Source: Neoconidiobolus thromboides FSU 785
Lineage: Eukaryota; Fungi; Entomophthoromycota
Direction: 5' to 3'
DNA: 64,000 bases
Assembly (NCBI GenBank): GCA_025603075.1
Contig: MU626258.1
Coordinates: 135,457 to 199,456 of the forward strand
The translations under genes and the position numbers were made by a program. Every line of letters starts with the position of its first letter. Within the stretch, counting starts at the first letter, position 1. Shown here one piece after another: positions 9,173-60,263 of the stretch. The notes beneath the pieces are model-generated. The model did not search any database. It was not told where the DNA came from and saw only the letters and a program-made list of their open reading frames with translations.

Positions 9173-10753
9173 TTATGACTTTTCTAAAGTTTGTTTACAA
9201 GAATAAGTACGTTTCGATGCATCTTTTGGCATCCAACCTTCTTTTAAACCAAGGAAGTAATCCCAATGCGGATTAATATGATTCTCTGTTTTAAAGTTCC
9301 AAAAGTACCAACCAATTCCATTTTCAAATGCATCCATTTGTTTTTCAGCAAATTGTTTTAAAAATTGTTTATACTCATTTGTAAATTTACTAACATCATC
9401 TTTACCCTCACAAGAACATTGTTCACAAATAGCACTATCTCCATCATAAGTACCATCATATCTAGATCCTAATTTAATCCCATTTAACCACTTCCCACAA
9501 TCATTAGATGCAACGGAAAATTCCCCACACATTGTCCATCCAAATTTCTCGGATGAAGTAGTAAAATCTTTAGCCCAAGCTGTACATGGAAAATCATTAA
9601 TATCATTTAATGATTTTGATATTAATTCTTTAGCAAATATAATATAATTATGAGAATCCAGAACTATATTTTTAAAATTCTCTTTTGGCATTTTATTATG
9701 CCATTTATCTAACCCTAAAAAACCTTCATGATATACAAGTAATGGTAAATTATTATCATTATTTCGATTTTTTCTAACTGATTCATATATTTGTTTATAA
9801 AAATTTAATATACCAATTTGATCATGAGTTTTATAAACAGCTGGTTCATTTAATACACCAATTTGAGTTACTAAATTGTTCCATTCTGGTGTACTAAAAT
9901 AATCTACAACTTGTAATAAAATATTACTAAATCTTTTAACATTCCCTTCACTCTCTGTAAAATTTTTATTTAAAAATCGAATATCACCAAATCTACCTGA
10001 ATGATTCCATCCATTTTGAGATCCTGGTGCTGCATGAAAATCAATCATTACTCTTATTCCATATTTTCTACACCATTGTAACCCTCTTAACAAATATTTC
10101 CAACTTCCATAAATAAAATTCTCATTATCTTGATTATCTATCATCCAGTAACCAATAGGAATACGTACATGATTTAAACCAGCATCTCGAATTATTTTAA
10201 TATCTTCTTCTGTTAAAAAAGTTTCATAATGTTTGATTAATCTTTTTGTACATTCTTTTTTACCAATAGTTTCACATAATGTCCATTCATCTAATACCCC
10301 TTCATCTATTTTATCTTCATAAATAGATGGGACAATAAAGGGTTCGGGTACTAACCAACCACCTAAATTAACCCCTCGAATTTTCATTTTTCCATATTCA
10401 AATACTTGATTTAATGCTGGTGTATTTTTATTGGGACTAATATTATCGTTAAATTCACCTAAATCTTTAGGTATTATTGTTAAATCTGGCTTTTCTACTA
10501 AGCCATTACTATTTATTTCAACTAAAGTTGGCATGAAGTTATTTGATTGATTCTGTTGCTTTGGTATTATTACTAAAAATACAATACATAAAGTAAGAGC
10601 AGTTATGATTAGAAATGATATTAAGCTTAATATAAACCATTTATATCGAATAAATATACTTTGATTACGTCCATTTAAACTTCGACTTTGATAACTTCGA
10701 TTCAATTCCTCTGTAGATGGATTTGCTGTCAATTTATATTCATTAATGACCAT
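9173..10753 (-). CDS. GH5 exo-beta-1,3-glucanase-like protein with N-terminal transmembrane anchor (copy a)
   Basis: Intronless 526-aa ORF with IRGVNLGGWLVPEPFI, NHVRIPIGYW, APGSQNGWNHSG, the acid/base motif LNEP, the nucleophile motif GEFS and GWYFWNFK. A hydrophobic helix sits at about aa 38-63. Confidence 0.93.
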   Translation of the reverse strand: MVINEYKLTANPSTEELNRSYQSRSLNGRNQSIFIRYKWFILSLISFLIITALTLCIVFLVIIPKQQNQSNNFMPTLVEINSNGLVEKPDLTIIPKDLGEFNDNISPNKNTPALNQVFEYGKMKIRGVNLGGWLVPEPFIVPSIYEDKIDEGVLDEWTLCETIGKKECTKRLIKHYETFLTEEDIKIIRDAGLNHVRIPIGYWMIDNQDNENFIYGSWKYLLRGLQWCRKYGIRVMIDFHAAPGSQNGWNHSGRFGDIRFLNKNFTESEGNVKRFSNILLQVVDYFSTPEWNNLVTQIGVLNEPAVYKTHDQIGILNFYKQIYESVRKNRNNDNNLPLLVYHEGFLGLDKWHNKMPKENFKNIVLDSHNYIIFAKELISKSLNDINDFPCTAWAKDFTTSSEKFGWTMCGEFSVASNDCGKWLNGIKLGSRYDGTYDGDSAICEQCSCEGKDDVSKFTNEYKQFLKQFAEKQMDAFENGIGWYFWNFKTENHINPHWDYFLGLKEGWMPKDASKRTYSCKQTLEKS

Positions 10754-11958: not shown

Positions 11959-13479
11959 ATGAAGGACGCCTATCGCTCAGTACAAAATAATCGAAGAGAG
12001 AATTTATCCTTTTTTCAACGATTTAAATGGTGGATTATAGCAGCATTAAGTTTTATAGTAATATTAGTTATTGTACTAGTAGTTGTATTTGTAGCTGTTT
12101 TACCAAACCAAAATAAATCCAGTGGAACTGGAAATGTAGATAGTTCAGGATTAGTTCAAAAACCAGATCTTTCAGTATTTCCAAAAGATTTAAAGGTAGA
12201 TGATACAGCACAAGCTAATAAATATGTTCCACCTCTTAATGAACCATTTCCATATGGTACAGAAATGAAAATTCGAGGAGTTAATTTAGGTGGTTGGTTA
12301 GTACCTGAGCCCTTTATTGTCCCATCTATATTTGAAGATCATATTGATGAAGAGGTTGTTGATGAATGGACTTTGTGTGAGAAAATTGGTAAGAAAAAAT
12401 GTAGTGAACGTTTATTAAAACATTATGAAACTTGGGTTACCGAAGAAGATATTAAAACAATTCGAGATGCTGGTTTAAATCATGTACGTATTCCTATTGG
12501 TTACTGGCAACTTGATATTAAAGATAATGAACCATTTATTTATGGTGGTTGGGATTATTTATTAAAAGGGATTGAATGGTGTAGAAAATATGGATTAAGA
12601 GTGATGATTGATTTTCATGGTGCTCCAGGTTCCCAAAATGGATGGAATCATTCAGGTAGACTTGGTGATATTCGATTTTTAAATAAGAATCTTACCGAAT
12701 CTCCACAACATGTTGAGCGTTTTATGAAAATTGTATTAGATGTAGTCAAGTACTTTGATAAAGATGAGTATAGAAATATTGTTACTCAAATTGGTGTGCT
12801 TAATGAACCTGCTGTCTATAAGACAGATCAAAATCTTACTTTAGAATTCTATAAAAAGAGTTATGAAGAAATCCGCAAAATTAATGGTAATAGAAAAAAT
12901 AACCCCTTATTAATTTACCATGAGGGTTTTCTCGGTCCATCTAAATGGGAAGGTAAACTTCCAGCGGATCAATTTCCACGTGTTGTTTTAGATTCCCATA
13001 ATTATATTATCTTTGATCGTGGTCTTATCGTTAAACCATTAGATGAAATTGGTAACTTCCCATGTACTGCTTGGGTAAATGACTTCCAAAAGAGTTCCAA
13101 GAATTTTGGATGGACAATGTGTGGGGAATTTTCCGTTGCATCCAATGATTGTGGTAAATGGTTAAATGGGATTGGATTAGGTGCACGATATGAAGGTACC
13201 TATGAAGTAAAAACTCCAGCTTGCAAAGATTGTACATGTAAAGATGTGGATGATTATACTAAATTCACAAGTAAACATAAAACTTTCTTAGCGCAATTTG
13301 CTCAAAAACAAATGGATGCATTTGAAAATGGAATTGGTTGGTACTTTTGGAACTTTAAAACAGAGAATCATATTAATCCGCATTGGGATTACTTCCTTGG
13401 TTTAAAAGAAGGTTGGATGCCAAAAGATGCTAATAATCGTCAATATGGCTGTCCCCCTCCTGAAAAAAAGCAAAATTAG
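11959..13479 (+). CDS. GH5 exo-beta-1,3-glucanase-like protein with N-terminal transmembrane anchor (copy b), head-to-head with copy a
   Basis: Same GH5 motifs as copy a (LNEP, GEFS), with TM helix WWIIAALSFIVILVIVLVVVFVAVL. Confidence 0.93.
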   Translation: MKDAYRSVQNNRRENLSFFQRFKWWIIAALSFIVILVIVLVVVFVAVLPNQNKSSGTGNVDSSGLVQKPDLSVFPKDLKVDDTAQANKYVPPLNEPFPYGTEMKIRGVNLGGWLVPEPFIVPSIFEDHIDEEVVDEWTLCEKIGKKKCSERLLKHYETWVTEEDIKTIRDAGLNHVRIPIGYWQLDIKDNEPFIYGGWDYLLKGIEWCRKYGLRVMIDFHGAPGSQNGWNHSGRLGDIRFLNKNLTESPQHVERFMKIVLDVVKYFDKDEYRNIVTQIGVLNEPAVYKTDQNLTLEFYKKSYEEIRKINGNRKNNPLLIYHEGFLGPSKWEGKLPADQFPRVVLDSHNYIIFDRGLIVKPLDEIGNFPCTAWVNDFQKSSKNFGWTMCGEFSVASNDCGKWLNGIGLGARYEGTYEVKTPACKDCTCKDVDDYTKFTSKHKTFLAQFAQKQMDAFENGIGWYFWNFKTENHINPHWDYFLGLKEGWMPKDANNRQYGCPPPEKKQN

Positions 13480-30071: not shown

Positions 30072-31628
30072 TTATTTGCTATTCTTAACCATTGCACAGG
30101 AAATCTCTCTTTTACCAGCATCTTTTGGAATCCAACCATTCTTAAGACCAAGTGAGTAATCCCATCCTGGATTAACACCATTTTCAGTTCTATATGTCCA
30201 AAAGAACCAACCACTACCTTCTTCAAAAGCATCCATTTGTGCTTCAACAAAGCTCTTTAAAAATTTCTTATAGTTATCAGTGAACCCTTTGTAGTTAATA
30301 AATTTATCGCATTTACATGTTGGGCAAGCAGGTTTGGCATCAAAAAAGGTGCCATCGTATTTAGCTCCATTACCAACCCCATTCAAATTCAAACCACAAT
30401 CATTTGGTGCTAACGAAAATTCGGCAGACACAGTCAAAGCAAAGTGCCCCTTACTTTCAATAAACGAATCTCTCCATCCTTGACAAGGAAATGCTATCAC
30501 ATTAGCTTCTGGCGCAGTTGCAAAGTTTGGATCAAAAGCTACATAGTTATGGGCATCAATCGCAATATTATTATAGGTAGGTTCAGGTAATTCCTTAGGC
30601 CATGTTTGCAATCCCTTAAATGCATCGTGATAAGATATGATCAAATCCTTATTATCTCCTGTAGCTTCTCTTATTAGCTTATAACTTTTTCTATAAAAAT
30701 CAGCAATCCCTTTAACGTTATTAGTTACAAAAGTATTTGGTTCATTGATAACGCCAATCATTGTAACCACATTACGGAACTCTTTTTTATTGAAATAAGT
30801 AACTACATCTTTAAGTACCTTTAAAAACCTTTCTTCATTCTTTGAACTATCTGGATCTTCAGGGTTAAGGAAACGAACCTTACCAGCTCTACCTGAATGA
30901 TTCCAACCATTTTGAGATCCAGGAACTGCATGAAAATCAAGCATTACTCTTATTCCATATTTCCTACACCATTGAATACTTCTCAATAGATATTTCCATC
31001 CACCATAAACAAATGGCTCGTCTTCTTCAATATCAATAGCCCAGTGACCAATTGGAATACGGACATGATTTAAGCCTGCATCTGCAATATCCTTAATATC
31101 ATCTTCAGTTATAAACTTATTGTAATGATTAGCCAACACTTTTTGGCACTTTTCTTTGCCTAACTCAGTACACAAAGACCATTCGTCTTCTACCGGTTTA
31201 CTAGTATGGTTGGAGTACAATGAAGGCACAATAAACGGTTCAGGCACCAACCAACCACCCAAGTTAACACCTCTCACTTTTTTAGTAGTATAATCAAATT
31301 TATCTTTTAATGCAACCGAATACGAGTTTGCCACAGCATCATTATCAAAATCACCTAAATCATTTGGTATTTTGGTCAAGTCAGGTTTTGTAAACACATT
31401 CATCTTAACGTTATTTTGAGTACCCTTTTTGGGGTCACTGCCACCATTATCCGAGTCTGGGGTTTCACCATCTTTACCGCTATCAATATTTGAGCTTGAA
31501 GTAGGAGAGTTCTGGTTCGGAATTACAACACCGAAAACGACCCCTAAAACAATGGCTAATACAACTACCAAGGCTACACTGCCTATTATCAACCATTTAA
31601 AACGCTGAATACATGTTCTTTGTCCCAT
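30072..31628 (-). CDS. GH5 exo-beta-1,3-glucanase-like protein with N-terminal transmembrane anchor (copy c)
   Basis: Contains VRGVNLGGWLVPEPFI, INEP, AEFS and GWFFWTYR, plus TM helix WLIIGSVALVVVLAIVLGVVFGVVI. Confidence 0.93.
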   Translation of the reverse strand: MGQRTCIQRFKWLIIGSVALVVVLAIVLGVVFGVVIPNQNSPTSSSNIDSGKDGETPDSDNGGSDPKKGTQNNVKMNVFTKPDLTKIPNDLGDFDNDAVANSYSVALKDKFDYTTKKVRGVNLGGWLVPEPFIVPSLYSNHTSKPVEDEWSLCTELGKEKCQKVLANHYNKFITEDDIKDIADAGLNHVRIPIGHWAIDIEEDEPFVYGGWKYLLRSIQWCRKYGIRVMLDFHAVPGSQNGWNHSGRAGKVRFLNPEDPDSSKNEERFLKVLKDVVTYFNKKEFRNVVTMIGVINEPNTFVTNNVKGIADFYRKSYKLIREATGDNKDLIISYHDAFKGLQTWPKELPEPTYNNIAIDAHNYVAFDPNFATAPEANVIAFPCQGWRDSFIESKGHFALTVSAEFSLAPNDCGLNLNGVGNGAKYDGTFFDAKPACPTCKCDKFINYKGFTDNYKKFLKSFVEAQMDAFEEGSGWFFWTYRTENGVNPGWDYSLGLKNGWIPKDAGKREISCAMVKNSK

Positions 31629-48559: not shown

Positions 48560-48792
48560 ATACTATAGAATGTAAAATGTTGCGAATAATTGAATGTAAG
48601 CGTCCTATAAACATTTAATAAACCTTTTCTTTCATATACATTAATATATATATGATTTTTTTATATTCTTGAAAGAATGTTGGTTAGCTTCCAAGTACTT
48701 TATGTCAGAAATGAACGAACAAATAGATAAATTAAGATAGAGAAGATAATCACCATAAAGTGAGCACTCATGTCTTTTTTGTTTTTATATAT

Positions 48793-48891
48793 GGGGATGT
48801 ATTTTTGTATTTAAGAGTTTTGCTAGTAATTTTTCCACTCAAATAGCGCTTAAAAGATGGAAAAAGTAATGAAGCCAAAAAAAACAATCCC
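48793..48891 (+). mobile_element. MITE family M, copy 11
   Basis: GGGGATG...AATCCC termini, ATAT/ATAT flanks. Confidence 0.92.
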
Positions 48892-48902
48892 ATATAATAT
48901 AT

Positions 48903-49001
48903 AGGGATGTATTTTTAGGTTTGAGAATTTTACTAATAATTTTTCCGCTCAACTGAGCACTTAAAAACTGGAAGAAGTGATGAAATAAAAAGAACATCCC
49001 T
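48903..49001 (+). mobile_element. MITE family M, copy 12 (11 bp after copy 11)
   Basis: AGGGATG...CATCCCT termini, ATAT/ATAT flanks. Confidence 0.92.
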
Positions 49002-55400: not shown

Positions 55401-56604
55401 TAAAATACTCAATAATTATTTTATCATATAATAGTTATATAAAGTTATTTATAAAAATGGTACAATACAGTAAAAAAATGATACCATTTTTAGGAAAATT
55501 GTCTAATACTTTTGATAGATTATTCTCGATTATTTTTTACCAATCCAATAAATTTTTATTAGAAAGAGGAACCTTAGCAATAGTGAAATCATTGTCATTT
55601 CTCAAAATAAGCTGTTCTTAAATCTTTATCTGATAAAAAAAGAAGCTATAGAATTAGTAATTGCTAATAATAATAGAACAACACAGGCGCAAATTGAAGA
55701 ATACTATTTAATAGTTGCTGCGAAAAAATAAGTTATTATTAGGTCCTTTTTCTTGGTTAATCGGATAATTAAAAAATAAGTTGGTTATTTTTGCAAAACT
55801 AAAAAAACATAAGAATTTTCCATTGTTTAGTAATATCCTCAGGTTCTTTGTTTATAACTTGGTTTCTATTTTAACCGAGCTTATAAGATTTTTCTGAATT
55901 GCTTTAATCTTCAATTTAATACCCAACTTATACTACAGCTATATTAAATACACCTATCCGGTAAATCGATGTATCCGATATGTTGATTATTCATAGATTA
56001 AGTTATCAGATACATATTATTTAAAAATATGTAATTGTTAGATAAATACGCCATTAATTGAATATATATAATTATCAGATATGTATAATCTAACAGTATA
56101 AAATTATCAGATTATTTTTTACCCTATAAATATTTTTTAAAAATGTTAATTTAATATTAGATATTACAAGTTTTTAAGTAATTCAAAATAAATACCATAA
56201 TAATACAATCAAAACTTCTTAAAGTCAATTATGGCATAGATTTAATTTCATCTATAATTGATAATAAAGTTAATCTGGTATTAATTTAAATACAAATTTA
56301 CACTAATATAAGTAATATTATTATAAATTAAAATTAGGAAAGTATTTTTTACTGATAATTTACATTCGAATTTGGCAACGATTTGACCCTATTTTTTATA
56401 AAAGCTGATTATATGCTAAAATAAATTTAAAATTTATAGCTTATATATATAATATATGATAAAGTTACATAAGAAATAAAGGTAATTGAGCTTAATAAAT
56501 ATAGAGATCACTATAGTTTTCATTATTTCTGAATGGTCGTAAATGTGATTAAATAATCAACTAATTTGTTTCATTAATAATTAAATTTAAAATTTTGAAA
56601 AAAT

Positions 56605-56702
56605 AGGGATGTATTTTTATGTTTAGAATTTTACTAACAATTTTTCTGTTCAAATAGCGCTTAAAAGATGGAAAAAGTGATGAAGCTAGAAAAAGCATCC
56701 TC
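56605..56702 (+). mobile_element. MITE family M, copy 14
   Basis: AGGGATG...CATCCTC termini, AAAT/AAAT direct flanks. Confidence 0.92.
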
Positions 56703-56945
56703 AAATGTAAAATAGGGAAACTTTGCATAAACAGAAGCGTGTAACGGTTGTTTTACATTGGAGCTGTATTAAGAGATTCTGTTTTATTATAACAGTGCTA
56801 TAAAAGTTTGGCTTTATCTTTATTTTTAATTTAAAGTGGATTAATTAATAAATAATCTACTCACCATCTCATATTCTATTTAGATTAATGTTGTAAAAAA
56901 CAGTGTCATAGATTAATTGATTTTGATTAAGTGAATTTTACAAAT

Positions 56946-57043
56946 GGGGATGTGTTTTTGTATTTAAGAATTTTACTAGCAATTTTTCCACTTAAATAAC
57001 GCTTAAAAGATGTAAAAATAATGAAATCAAAAAAAACATCCCC
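56946..57043 (+). mobile_element. MITE family M, copy 15
   Basis: GGGGATG...CATCCCC termini, AAAT/AAAT direct flanks. Confidence 0.93.
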
Positions 57044-57098
57044 AAATGTTATTAAAATGCTTAAAATAAACTATTTCAATAATTTATAAATACTATAT

Positions 57099-57196
57099 AG
57101 GGGTGTTTTTTTGGTTTCATCACTTTTTCTACCTTTTAAGTGCTATTTAAGTGGGAAAATTATTAGTAAAATTATTAAGCACAAAAATACATCCCC
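57099..57196 (-). mobile_element. MITE family M, copy 16
   Basis: AGGGGTG...CATCCCC termini, ATAT/ATAT flanks. Confidence 0.92.
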
Positions 57197-57481
57197 ATAT
57201 ATCTCTTTTATTCAAAAATTTTATTAACAATTTCCTACTCAATAATATTTAAAAATAAAAAAATAAAAAAAATGAATTTTTGATAAAATCTATAAATATA
57301 AGTTTTTTTTACAAATAATATTCTATTTTAAATATTAAAATTTTTTCATTAAAGGAACAATAATTTTGGAATATAAATTAGCCTAATGTTTTTTATAATT
57401 TCTGTAATTTTTAATTTTATTTAATAATAGTAAATAATTTATAATTGTAATAATGCCTTAAAATTAATATTATGTATACAT

Positions 57482-57576
57482 GAGGATGTTTTTTTGTTTA
57501 AGAATTTTACCACAATCTTTCCACTGAAATAGCGCTTAAAAAATGGAAAAATAATGAAACCAAAAAAAACAGCCCC
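57482..57576 (+). mobile_element. MITE family M, copy 17 (abuts the left end of element E)
   Basis: GAGGATG...CAGCCCC termini, ACAT/ACGT flanks. Confidence 0.9.
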
Positions 57577-57723
57577 ACGTTGTGAAATCTGGTACTCAGT
57601 GATTGGAGTCAAAAGCAGTTCTTTGCTTAATTGGCTAGCCGTGAGTCGAAAGGTCTTAATTTATGCGGCTAGATAGACTTGAATTACGAAGAACAGAACG
57701 TAGTAGGCTATGGGCTATGTAAG

Positions 57724-58185
57724 TGTGAAATATCGCTTTGTCAGTCTCATGGTCAATTATAGCATAATAATCCCCTAAGCTGTTGTGTTCTTGAGTTTAG
57801 AGACAATTAATTTCATGCTCTTATTTTGATTTGCTATGAAAATTTCTATCTTCGTCTCAAAGAATATTATCCTCTCGTTTTGATATATATACTTGTCGAA
57901 GTATAAAGGAGATTCTAAAATATAGTAGCTCAAGGCTTTTTAACTGAATTATTCCCTGATATCTCGAACATTTAATAAAGCCACTAAGTTTACTTAATAG
58001 TATTTTACGTAGATTTACTTAGTATTGTCTATTCTATTTGTCTTATATAGTCTGTAGCCTATTACGTGGTATTCTTCGTAACCCAAGTCTATCTTAGTCA
58101 CATAAACTAAGACCTTTCGACTTACAGTGTGGTCAACCAGGTAGTAGCTGTTTTTGACTCCAATCACTGAGTATCAGATTTCGCA
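57724..58185 (+). mobile_element. Element E, inner copy (462 bp; solo-LTR-like), intact
   Basis: TGTGAAAT...ATTTCGCA termini flanked by TAAG/TAAG. Internal TATAAA at 57902 and AATAAA at 57974. Confidence 0.82.
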
Positions 58186-58410
58186 TAAGACAAACAGAAT
58201 AGACAATACTAATGTAAAATCTACATAAAATACTATCAAAAAGATTTAGTGGTTTTATTAAAGGTAAAATATGAAAGGATAATTCAATTAAAAAGCTTTG
58301 AATTACTATGTTCTAAAATGTCTTTTATATTCCTACAAGTATGAATATCAAAACAAGAGGATAATATTCTTTGGAATGAAGTTGGAAATTCTTATAACAA
58401 ATCAAAATAA

Positions 58411-58510
58411 GGGGATGTATTTTTGTATTTGAGAATTTTACTAACAATTTTTCCACTCAAATAGCACCCAAAAGATGGAAAAAATAATGAAGCCAAAAAA
58501 AAACATCCTC
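58411..58510 (+). mobile_element. MITE family M, copy 18 (inserted inside the outer copy of element E)
   Basis: GGGGATG...CATCCTC termini, ATAA/ATAA direct flanks. Removing it restores colinearity with the inner E copy. Confidence 0.93.
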
Positions 58511-58978
58511 ATAAGAAGAGCATGGGATTGATTGTCTCTGAACTCAAGAACATAACTTAAGCGATTATTATGTTATAATCAATCATGGAGCTAACAAAGC
58601 GATATTTCACAGTATACATGAATATATAATATTAATAAGATAATAAAATTATAACATGTATTATGGTTCATTTTATTTATAGATATAATAATAATTAAAA
58701 GTAAATAGATAAATTGTATTATAGCAAAACTTAAAATTGTAAATAATATAAAGTTTTTTTTAAAGAAATTTCTAAATTATTGTTACGAAAAATTAAAATG
58801 AATAGGTCATATAATTAGCAAAAGATATATATAATATTATTTATAATAAAAAAACAAAACGTTATTTAAAATTTATTAAACCTTTTGACTTTAAAAATAA
58901 AAAGCTAAAAGAACTATCAAAAAATTTAAAAATAGTTCAAAAAGTTGAAAAATTATAATAAAATTAATTAAAGCATAT

Positions 58979-59076
58979 GGGGATGTATTTTTTTATTTGA
59001 TAATTTCACTAACAATCTTTCCACTTGAATAGCACTCAAAAAATAGAAAAAGTGATGAAACCAAAAAAACATAACT
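58979..59076 (+). mobile_element. MITE family M, copy 19 (degenerate right end)
   Basis: Reads GGGGATGTATTTTTT...GAAAAAGTGATGAAACCAAAAAAACATAACT. Confidence 0.85.
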
Positions 59077-60263
59077 AAAAAAGCTTAAAGTAAAAAAATT
59101 TAAACCATATTTAGAAAAAGTATGTGAGTATTGATAGGATTTAACAATATTAAAAGTTATAATGTAGCGATATAAAAATAGAATGTTTATATACTAAAAT
59201 TCATTATATATCAGTTATCATACAGTATATTAATAGAATTACTTCAAGTTATAAGAACTAAAGCACATAAAGTATAATTTAAATAAATCTCTTTTTTTAT
59301 AAACAATTTTACAAGTATGATTACAATATATTAATAATAGAGTAAAAGATGATGAATGTAGCATCCAAATTAGACAATAATAAAACCGAGTTCTTTAAAC
59401 ATCTAAACATAGATAAACGAATAACAACAATAATAAATTATTGATTTCTAAGATTATTTGTAATCATCATTGTAAAATTTATATATGCATCTATTTCAAC
59501 ATTTATATTATTCCAGAATCCTTTTACACTCTTTACAAATTTTAAATGTATCGGTATATGACTAATAATGATAATGACAAAAACAGTAATAACAATGTCA
59601 GCCCTGACTATTGTTATTATTGCTATTATTATTGTTGTTATTTATTTATTATCATTTCATATACAATACAAAATCAACATGTTTATTTTTATCTATTATT
59701 CATTTCTTTATCTATGATAGTATATATCATAAAAATAATCAGAATAAGGCTAAAATAATAATTATAATACAATTATTATTTATTATTTATTACATATCTC
59801 ACTTAATGTACTTTCTTTTAATTAGATACTCAACTGCAATTTAACTATTAATAAAATTAACTTATTGGTTTAGTTTTATTCAAAATTGTAGTCACTTGAT
59901 TAGTAATTTTCAAATCAAAAATCAAAAAATTGAAAAACTGAAATTAAGGATTATCTTATTAGTTAATATAGATTTAAAATAAAGCTTAAAAAATTACTAT
60001 TTTATTATATAATATATTCTTTACTATTATTATCCTTTATATATGTATGAATTCACTGTATTTTATCTTATTATAACATGGTTATAATATTAATATTAAT
60101 ATTATCATTAAAGTCCCGGACTTTTTAAAATTAACTAAAGCTTTACTAGAATTTAAGTCAGGGAGAAAAAAACAGGTATTCTTAAATTTCCAAAATTCCA
60201 TTGAAAAATCAAAAAAATTCTAAAAATCTAATGTATTTGAACAAATTCTCAGGCTCTTTTAAT

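Follow-up and report, generated by a model that had tools for sequence, protein, structure and literature searches.

How did a single short module come to lie in two orientations, and to be interrupted twice, within about 1.1 kb of non-coding DNA in the insect-killing fungus Neoconidiobolus thromboides FSU 785? The block in question occupies 57474-58619 of the window, by which we mean the whole 64-kb stretch that was analysed, starting at base 135457 of contig MU626258.1 (assembly GCA_025603075.1). Such an arrangement could reflect independent insertions that happened to meet, an element steered into its own copies or into other transposons, or a local rearrangement that merely resembles nesting. 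Our analysis resolves the block into four stacked mobile-element insertions, in agreement with an earlier note that had counted at least four such events from the sequence. Two are copies of an element of about 460 bp, here called E, and two are MITEs of a family here called M. We consider it very probable that the block is a fossil pile-up, to which two old families, both of them non-coding and high-copy, contributed four independent insertions with no special targeting needed. The block lies in a gene-poor spacer about 1.8 kb upstream of a homogentisate dioxygenase gene. The window has a G+C content of 26% and carries fungal genes that include three GH5 glucanases, CLU, DAGAT and the homogentisate dioxygenase, and the nearest other relatives of one of its proteins come from Entomophthora muscae. 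Our literature search found no paper describing the repeats of Neoconidiobolus thromboides.

The anatomy of the block is collected in Table 1. Its coordinates and strings agree with those of the earlier note, which had removed MITE 18 together with an ATAA duplication and had arrived at E copies of about 461-462 bp. The outer copy, outer E, has the ends TGTGAAAT...ATTTCACA and is split after its base 143 by the inner copy; rebuilt from 57581-57723, 58190-58410 and 58515-58611, it measures 461 bp. The termini previously assigned to E hold for this outer copy, whereas inner E ends in ATTTCGCA, with one mismatch to the inverted end. MITE 17 had been described as abutting the left end of E. The two are indeed neighbours, with a gap of 4 bp between them that is filled by the right duplication of MITE 17 (ACGT), and this duplication in turn directly abuts the TGTG end of outer E. 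On the other side of MITE 17, the final 4 bp of the left GTATACAT (ACAT) double as its left target duplication. Excision of MITE 18 with one ATAA leaves outer E three bases (AAG) longer at that site (58511-58520) than inner E and the third copy described below; this surplus is either a separate small slippage indel or an insertion footprint.

Table 1. Features of the nested block, in window coordinates.
Feature	Position	Strand	Remarks
Left 8-bp direct repeat, GTATACAT	57474-57481	.	Brackets the whole block
MITE 17, 95 bp, family M, GAGGATGT...CAGCCCC	57482-57576	+	Flanked by ACAT 57478-57481 (left) and ACGT 57577-57580 (right)
Outer E, left 143 bp, TGTGAAATCTGG...CTATGTAAG	57581-57723	+	Last 4 bp (TAAG) are the left duplication of inner E
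Inner E, complete 462-bp inverted copy, + strand TGTGAAATATCG...CAGATTTCGCA	57724-58185	-	Flanked by TAAG 57720-57723 and TAAG 58186-58189
Outer E, continuation, starts TAAGACAAAC	58186-58410	+	Opens with the second TAAG (58186-58189), closes with ATAA (58407-58410)
MITE 18, 100 bp, family M, GGGGATGTAT...AAACATCCTC	58411-58510	+	Target duplication ATAA 58407-58410 / ATAA 58511-58514
Outer E, last part, ends CGATATTTCACA	58511-58611	+	Begins with the second ATAA (58511-58514)
Right 8-bp direct repeat, GTATACAT	58612-58619	.	

The nesting of one E copy within another can be read against copies that were never interrupted. Walking the contig via exact single-exon gene products added 33 kb to the window, for 97.8 kb read in all, and yielded a third complete copy of 466 bp, E3 (L003:6062-6527, corresponding to MU626258.1 211157-211622), which lies outside the window, about 11.7 kb past its end, and is separated from the block by about 17 kb. 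Both inner E and E3 are uninterrupted at the two sites where outer E is broken, carrying a single TAAG (…CTATGTAAGACAA…) at one and a single ATAA at the other. The insertion reading is secure because these two copies act as empty-site references, and they bear out the proposal that an intact inverted E flanked by TAAG on both sides had entered an older E. Taking out the insert and one duplication rejoins outer E at its full length and colinear with inner E and E3, and the insert itself has both complete termini and a host-derived duplication (TAAG|TGTGAAAT...ATTTCGCA|TAAG). Inner E and the rebuilt outer E are 81% identical from end to end, with 66 transitions, 21 transversions and 11 gap columns, which falls within the 75-85% that had been judged by eye. 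The three homologous E segments give BLASTN E-values of 3e-58, 9e-27 and 2e-23, far beyond chance.

The differences among these copies also bear on their relative age. Outer E, inner E and E3 are roughly equidistant from one another, at 80-82% identity, and carry 51, 37 and 41 private changes, respectively. Family contigs that reach 80% identity number 4-29 per sequencing run on the parts of outer E, compared to 50-90 on inner E. Both the private changes and the smaller number of family contigs fit outer E being the older copy. The MITEs diverge from the M consensus by 18% over 95 bp (MITE 17) and by 12% (MITE 18), so that outer E, at about 11%, is nominally less diverged than MITE 17. This would fit an order in which the MITE arrived first, but that order leaves four bases unexplained, as set out below. 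Transitions outnumber transversions by about 3:1 between the E copies of the block and by about 5:1 between the family contigs and the window copies in 56200-59800, the latter in all four runs and symmetrically in direction. RIP-like mutation was considered as the cause of the divergence and rejected, as the transitions run in all four directions.

The order of events can be approached from the flanks of the block. Removing MITE 17 and one of its duplications leaves outer E flanked on both sides by GTATACAT, an 8-bp match with a chance of about 1e-4 at the local base composition. This 8-bp repeat, in place of a 4-bp one, had been missed by the earlier note, as had the tendency of E ends to abut MITE ends, which is the more striking non-random feature. 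We tried every order of insertion that uses 4-bp duplications only, and none reproduces the flanks. If the MITE came first and E second, four bases (GTAT) are left unexplained; an E with a GTAT duplication followed by the MITE cannot yield ACAT...ACGT; and a composite unit of MITE and E with TG...CA ends would give a 7-bp duplication. The flanks are reproduced only by an 8-bp duplication on insertion of E, followed by entry of the MITE into ACAT. The empty site rebuilt from 57463-57481 and 58620-58636, ATTAATATTATGTATACATGAATATATAATATTAAT, is an AT-rich near-palindrome in which pairing around CATG extends to 16 of 18 positions, and it includes the perfect 10-bp palindrome ATGTATACAT. The unique flanks of the block belong to no other repeat family.

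From these flanks we infer that a first E copy entered the centre of the near-palindrome, leaving the 8-bp duplication. Three later insertions, listed here in arbitrary order, would have followed: a second E would have entered the first at base 143/144, inverted and duplicating TAAG; MITE 18 would have entered the first E, duplicating ATAA; and MITE 17 would have entered the ACAT that immediately adjoins the first E on its left. The 8-bp duplication of outer E, an exception to the 4-bp pattern, counts against this account and needs an aberrant integration or some other event. Occasional longer duplications have been described for the integrase-related GingerRoot, in 6 of 77 copies (PMC6839031).

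Beyond the block, E behaves as a dispersed family, as shown by its contigs, its sequencing depth and the third copy 17 kb away. We compared Logan contigs of four public DNA runs (X1-X4) with 56200-59800 at a likeness of at least 80%, taking the unique flanks as the single-copy reference (depth about 460 in X1, 23 in X2, 24 in X3 and 45 in X4). In these runs, the summed contig depth over the E region is 350-1700 times the single-copy depth, a figure that conveys an order of magnitude rather than a copy number, and the contigs that map to inner E are distinct from one another. The 97.8 kb of readable sequence holds 3 E and 34 M copies, consistent with the magnitudes from contig depth, and extrapolation to 30 Mb gives about 1000 copies of E and about 10,000 of M. 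In the 64-kb window itself, no E copy was found besides those of this locus. The earlier note had named a lack of further E copies and of any target-duplication pattern as an outcome that would tell against its reading; instead, the family is high-copy and E3 is flanked by a clean 4-bp duplication (AGAG|TGTG...CACA|AGAG).

The E copies share their termini. TGTG...CACA ends are present in all three, with TGCG at one end of inner E, and the inverted terminal repeat extends over only 8 bp. The target duplications have no fixed sequence (TAAG for inner E, AGAG for E3, and for outer E the 8-bp repeat, with no 4-bp match), and the three target sites lack a common motif. No open frame in E is longer than 57 codons. 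A tRNA- or SINE-like identity for E was rejected on a search of the window, which returned zero tRNA or Rfam matches. E is an old, non-coding, high-copy family, and one that is probably inactive.

Family M, to which both MITEs of the block belong, is shorter and more numerous. Its members are about 100 bp long, with GG-starting inverted ends (GGGGATGT...ACATCCCC), and diverge from their consensus by 9-25%. About 19 of the copies noted above lie in the window (for example 56946-57044, 48789-48894 and 48904-48999). Their summed contig depth is 2500-5000 times single-copy, which suggests thousands of copies, as an order of magnitude only. The 4-bp duplications flanking M are dominated by ATAT, with ATTT, AAAT, AATT, ATAA and TTAT also seen. 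The occurrence of the non-palindromic pairs ATTT, AAAT, ATAA and TTAT proves that the 4-mer was duplicated and does not belong to the inverted end. We considered M as an element with TG...CA ends that duplicates 2 bp and rejected this in favour of the 4-bp AWWT form, since the outer bases of the 4-mer agree on both sides, including in ATAA.

Sola1-derived MITEs are characterised by AWWT duplications of 4 bp and GG... ends, and M has both (PMC3845634). Judged from its termini and duplications, M is probably moved by a Sola-type transposase. It resembles the Sola1_NA MITEs of Bombyx and Rhodnius in its AWWT duplication, GG ends, high copy number and lack of coding capacity, but it is about 100 bp long compared to 194-709 bp, and its end sequence is unrelated (GGGGATGT in M, GGACCGTT in Sola1_NA) (PMC3845634). 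A survey of fungal genomes reported Sola1 in Rhizophagus but no more than single occurrences in Dikarya, and it registered hardly any cut-and-paste elements in the related Conidiobolus coronatus (PMC5751038). In view of that survey, E and M are probably undescribed families of known kinds.

The ends of E point to a different chemistry. Because E has TG...CA ends, an 8-bp inverted repeat, no coding capacity and 4-bp duplications, its mobilisation would be of the integrase type, with a retroviral-type DDE integrase joining the E ends across a 4-bp staggered cut. The 8-bp repeat around outer E raised the further candidate of a hAT-type non-autonomous element, which was rejected on account of the 4-bp duplications of inner E and E3. 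Within the integrase group, E may be what remains of an LTR retrotransposon later reduced to a solo LTR, or else a non-autonomous element resembling Ginger1, and on the ends, from which alone the class is read, the two are about equally likely. TG...CA ends are common to LTR retrotransposons and Ginger elements, and duplications are 4 bp in Ginger1 and 5 bp in most LTR elements (PMC6839031). Ginger elements are reported to be widespread in fungi (PMC5751038).

Each of the two assignments has likenesses in its favour. The non-autonomous derivatives of Ginger1 (Bao et al. 2010, as described in PMC6839031) are, in that description, likewise bounded by TG...CA ends, and they make the 4-bp duplications seen at two of the three E copies. 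Unlike Ginger1, E has a terminal inverted repeat of only 8 bp and one copy with an 8-bp duplication. Among the called genes of the 97.8 kb, we found no gene with an rve domain and no integrase-like transposase with matching ends. With solo LTRs of the Ty3/gypsy-like or BEL-like kind, E shares the TG...CA ends and short inverted repeat, a length that is uniformly about 460 bp, the lack of coding capacity and the many dispersed copies. In addition, its 4-bp duplication falls in the 4-6 bp range of solo LTRs, with 4 bp at two of the three E copies and 8 bp at the third. The same 97.8 kb yielded no full-length LTR element, internal region, primer-binding site, pol gene or pair of E copies in direct orientation.

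The insertion of E into its own copy had led the earlier note to suggest that E may target its own sequence or its own chromatin. Given 400-1000 E copies of 462 bp inserted at random, in 25-30 Mb or in the insertion-tolerant part of it, roughly one third, the computed expectation is 1.5-22 E-in-E nests per genome. Self-targeting is thus unnecessary because chance already predicts several such nests, and the suggestion is not supported by our data. To meet one nest in one of several hundred scanned windows is in line with chance. One of the three readable E copies is nested in E, and E3 is not: it lies in plain spacer, where the nearest M copy is about 140 bp away. The E-in-E nest would follow from copy number together with the survival of insertions only in non-genic, repeat-filled DNA. 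In rice, MITEs are known to form nested multimers, including by insertion into themselves (PMC5172404, citing Jiang and Wessler 2001). As that account presents the rice and maize multimers, they too are short non-coding elements inserted in one another, own family included, with each insertion independent and bearing its own target duplication and with the nests concentrated in non-genic DNA. Here, by comparison, the self-nested element is a 462-bp TG...CA element and not a Tourist- or Stowaway-type MITE, and the host is an early-diverging fungus.

A broader form of targeting survives better than any other alternative to the fossil pile-up, and we regard it as possible though unlikely. It holds that the enzyme of E is steered to MITE ends or to E itself as a safe-haven strategy, and that both the nest and the abutment record this targeting. 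One argument for it is the position of outer E, of which the end is separated from that of MITE 17 by exactly 4 bp; at the local density of M, an E end would fall within 4 bp of an M end by chance in about 0.7% of copies. At other loci, too, contigs of single-copy depth connect the terminus of an E with that of an M (56944 to 57724), with 5 such contigs in X1 and 6 in X4. A second fixed offset between E and M (56950 to 57724) recurs in 3 contigs of X1 and 2 of X4, also at single-copy depth, and extra single-copy contigs cross the junction of M end, 4 nt and E start with A instead of G at 57579. However, the contigs that provide these E-M joints are short, and the flanks of the present locus fit an arrival of E before M. 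The E-in-E component is weakened by the several cases per genome expected by chance, the placement of E3 in plain spacer counts against targeting, and no motif is common to the three target sites. The recurrent abutment of E and M ends is more frequent than chance would suggest and points to a real preference, of E for M or of M for E. A further version would make E an uncharacterised integrase-mobilised family of about 1000 copies, with no known autonomous partner, whose integration is directed at the ends of other transposons, namely Sola-like MITEs, and perhaps at E as well, with the 8-bp duplication at this MITE-adjacent copy as the footprint of that mode; we consider this unlikely.

It is very unlikely, and already largely refuted, that the block arose in a single event of local inverted duplication or rearrangement, or that it is an artefact in which repeat copies were wrongly joined during assembly. 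The case for an artefact is that short-read contigs break at every repeat boundary, with none of those listed spanning the block, and that X2 has none of the four sampled 31-mers in an 81-nt stretch across 57723|57724. Against this, both interruptions are exact, with complete insert ends and exactly 4 bp of host duplication when compared with the two uninterrupted paralogues. The same 81-nt stretch has three of its four sampled words in X1, two in X3 and three in X4, which comes from a different study than X1. In X1, 70% of the 31-mers sampled across the block are present, mostly locus-specific since the E copies differ by about 20% from one another and from E3. A recent local duplication is also at odds with the 19% difference between the two E copies of the block and with their about equal distance from E3. 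Exact contigs cover 57163-57515, from the flank into MITE 17, in several runs, and 58520/58563-58993, from the outer E end into the flank, crossing 58611|58612 in X1-X4. Assembly support for the block is partial, consisting of compatible short-read contigs and words, with no single read or contig shown to span it.

One of the runs differs from the others in this region. X2 bears the same species label as X4 and contains both outer flanks exactly, and has no contig matching the window bases at 57629, 57643 or 57694. The junction words missing from it (57685-57765) may represent a strain polymorphism or a gap in coverage.

Equally remote is the idea that the inverted E-in-E pair serves as a source of hairpin RNA, a Mu killer-like locus that would feed RNA interference against E when transcribed through: RNA interference is known in zygomycete fungi, the block contains a pair of inverted repeats, of 143 and about 320 bp, that interleave and are about 80% identical, and RNA runs contain 4-13% of its words, but the arms are 81% identical with longest perfect stretches of 22, 18 and 18 nt and would yield few matching small RNAs, the E family is old and probably inactive, and the small RNA-run signal may stem from MITE words in other transcripts.

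With the fossil pile-up as the preferred reading, the block has no demonstrated function and is an ordinary nested transposon cluster. Taken alone it is of little weight, yet its insertions are clean, textbook cases of nesting that let events be dated relative to one another in a genome that had gone unstudied. Two apparently undescribed repeat families of Neoconidiobolus thromboides are documented along with it, one a Sola1-like MITE present in thousands of copies and the other a 462-bp TG...CA element in about 1000; outside Rhizophagus, reports of Sola-type elements in fungi are scarce. Only the abutment of E and MITE ends could gain wider interest, as it would, if true, mean integration targeted to the ends of other transposons and a safe-haven strategy of that kind in an early-diverging fungus.

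Two further features of the region concern its genes. Just past the right end of the window lies an array of small genes (L003:2664-16091) that encode proteins of 90-196 aa with signal-peptide-like starts and a conserved FKG motif, and that have no Pfam match. A profile search of 1.84 billion representative proteins gave strong E-values only for the local array members, which marks the family as private to the locus. Paralogue searches for a GPCR and for the small secreted-protein family matched only local genes, apart from one weak match from another genome. Within the window, three diverged GH5 exo-beta-1,3-glucanase paralogues (9173-10753, 11959-13479 and 30072-31628) are 47-49% identical to one another. 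The GH5 paralogues share a span of 25 kb with several DAGAT gene pieces, a clustering that suggests birth and death of genes on a local scale.
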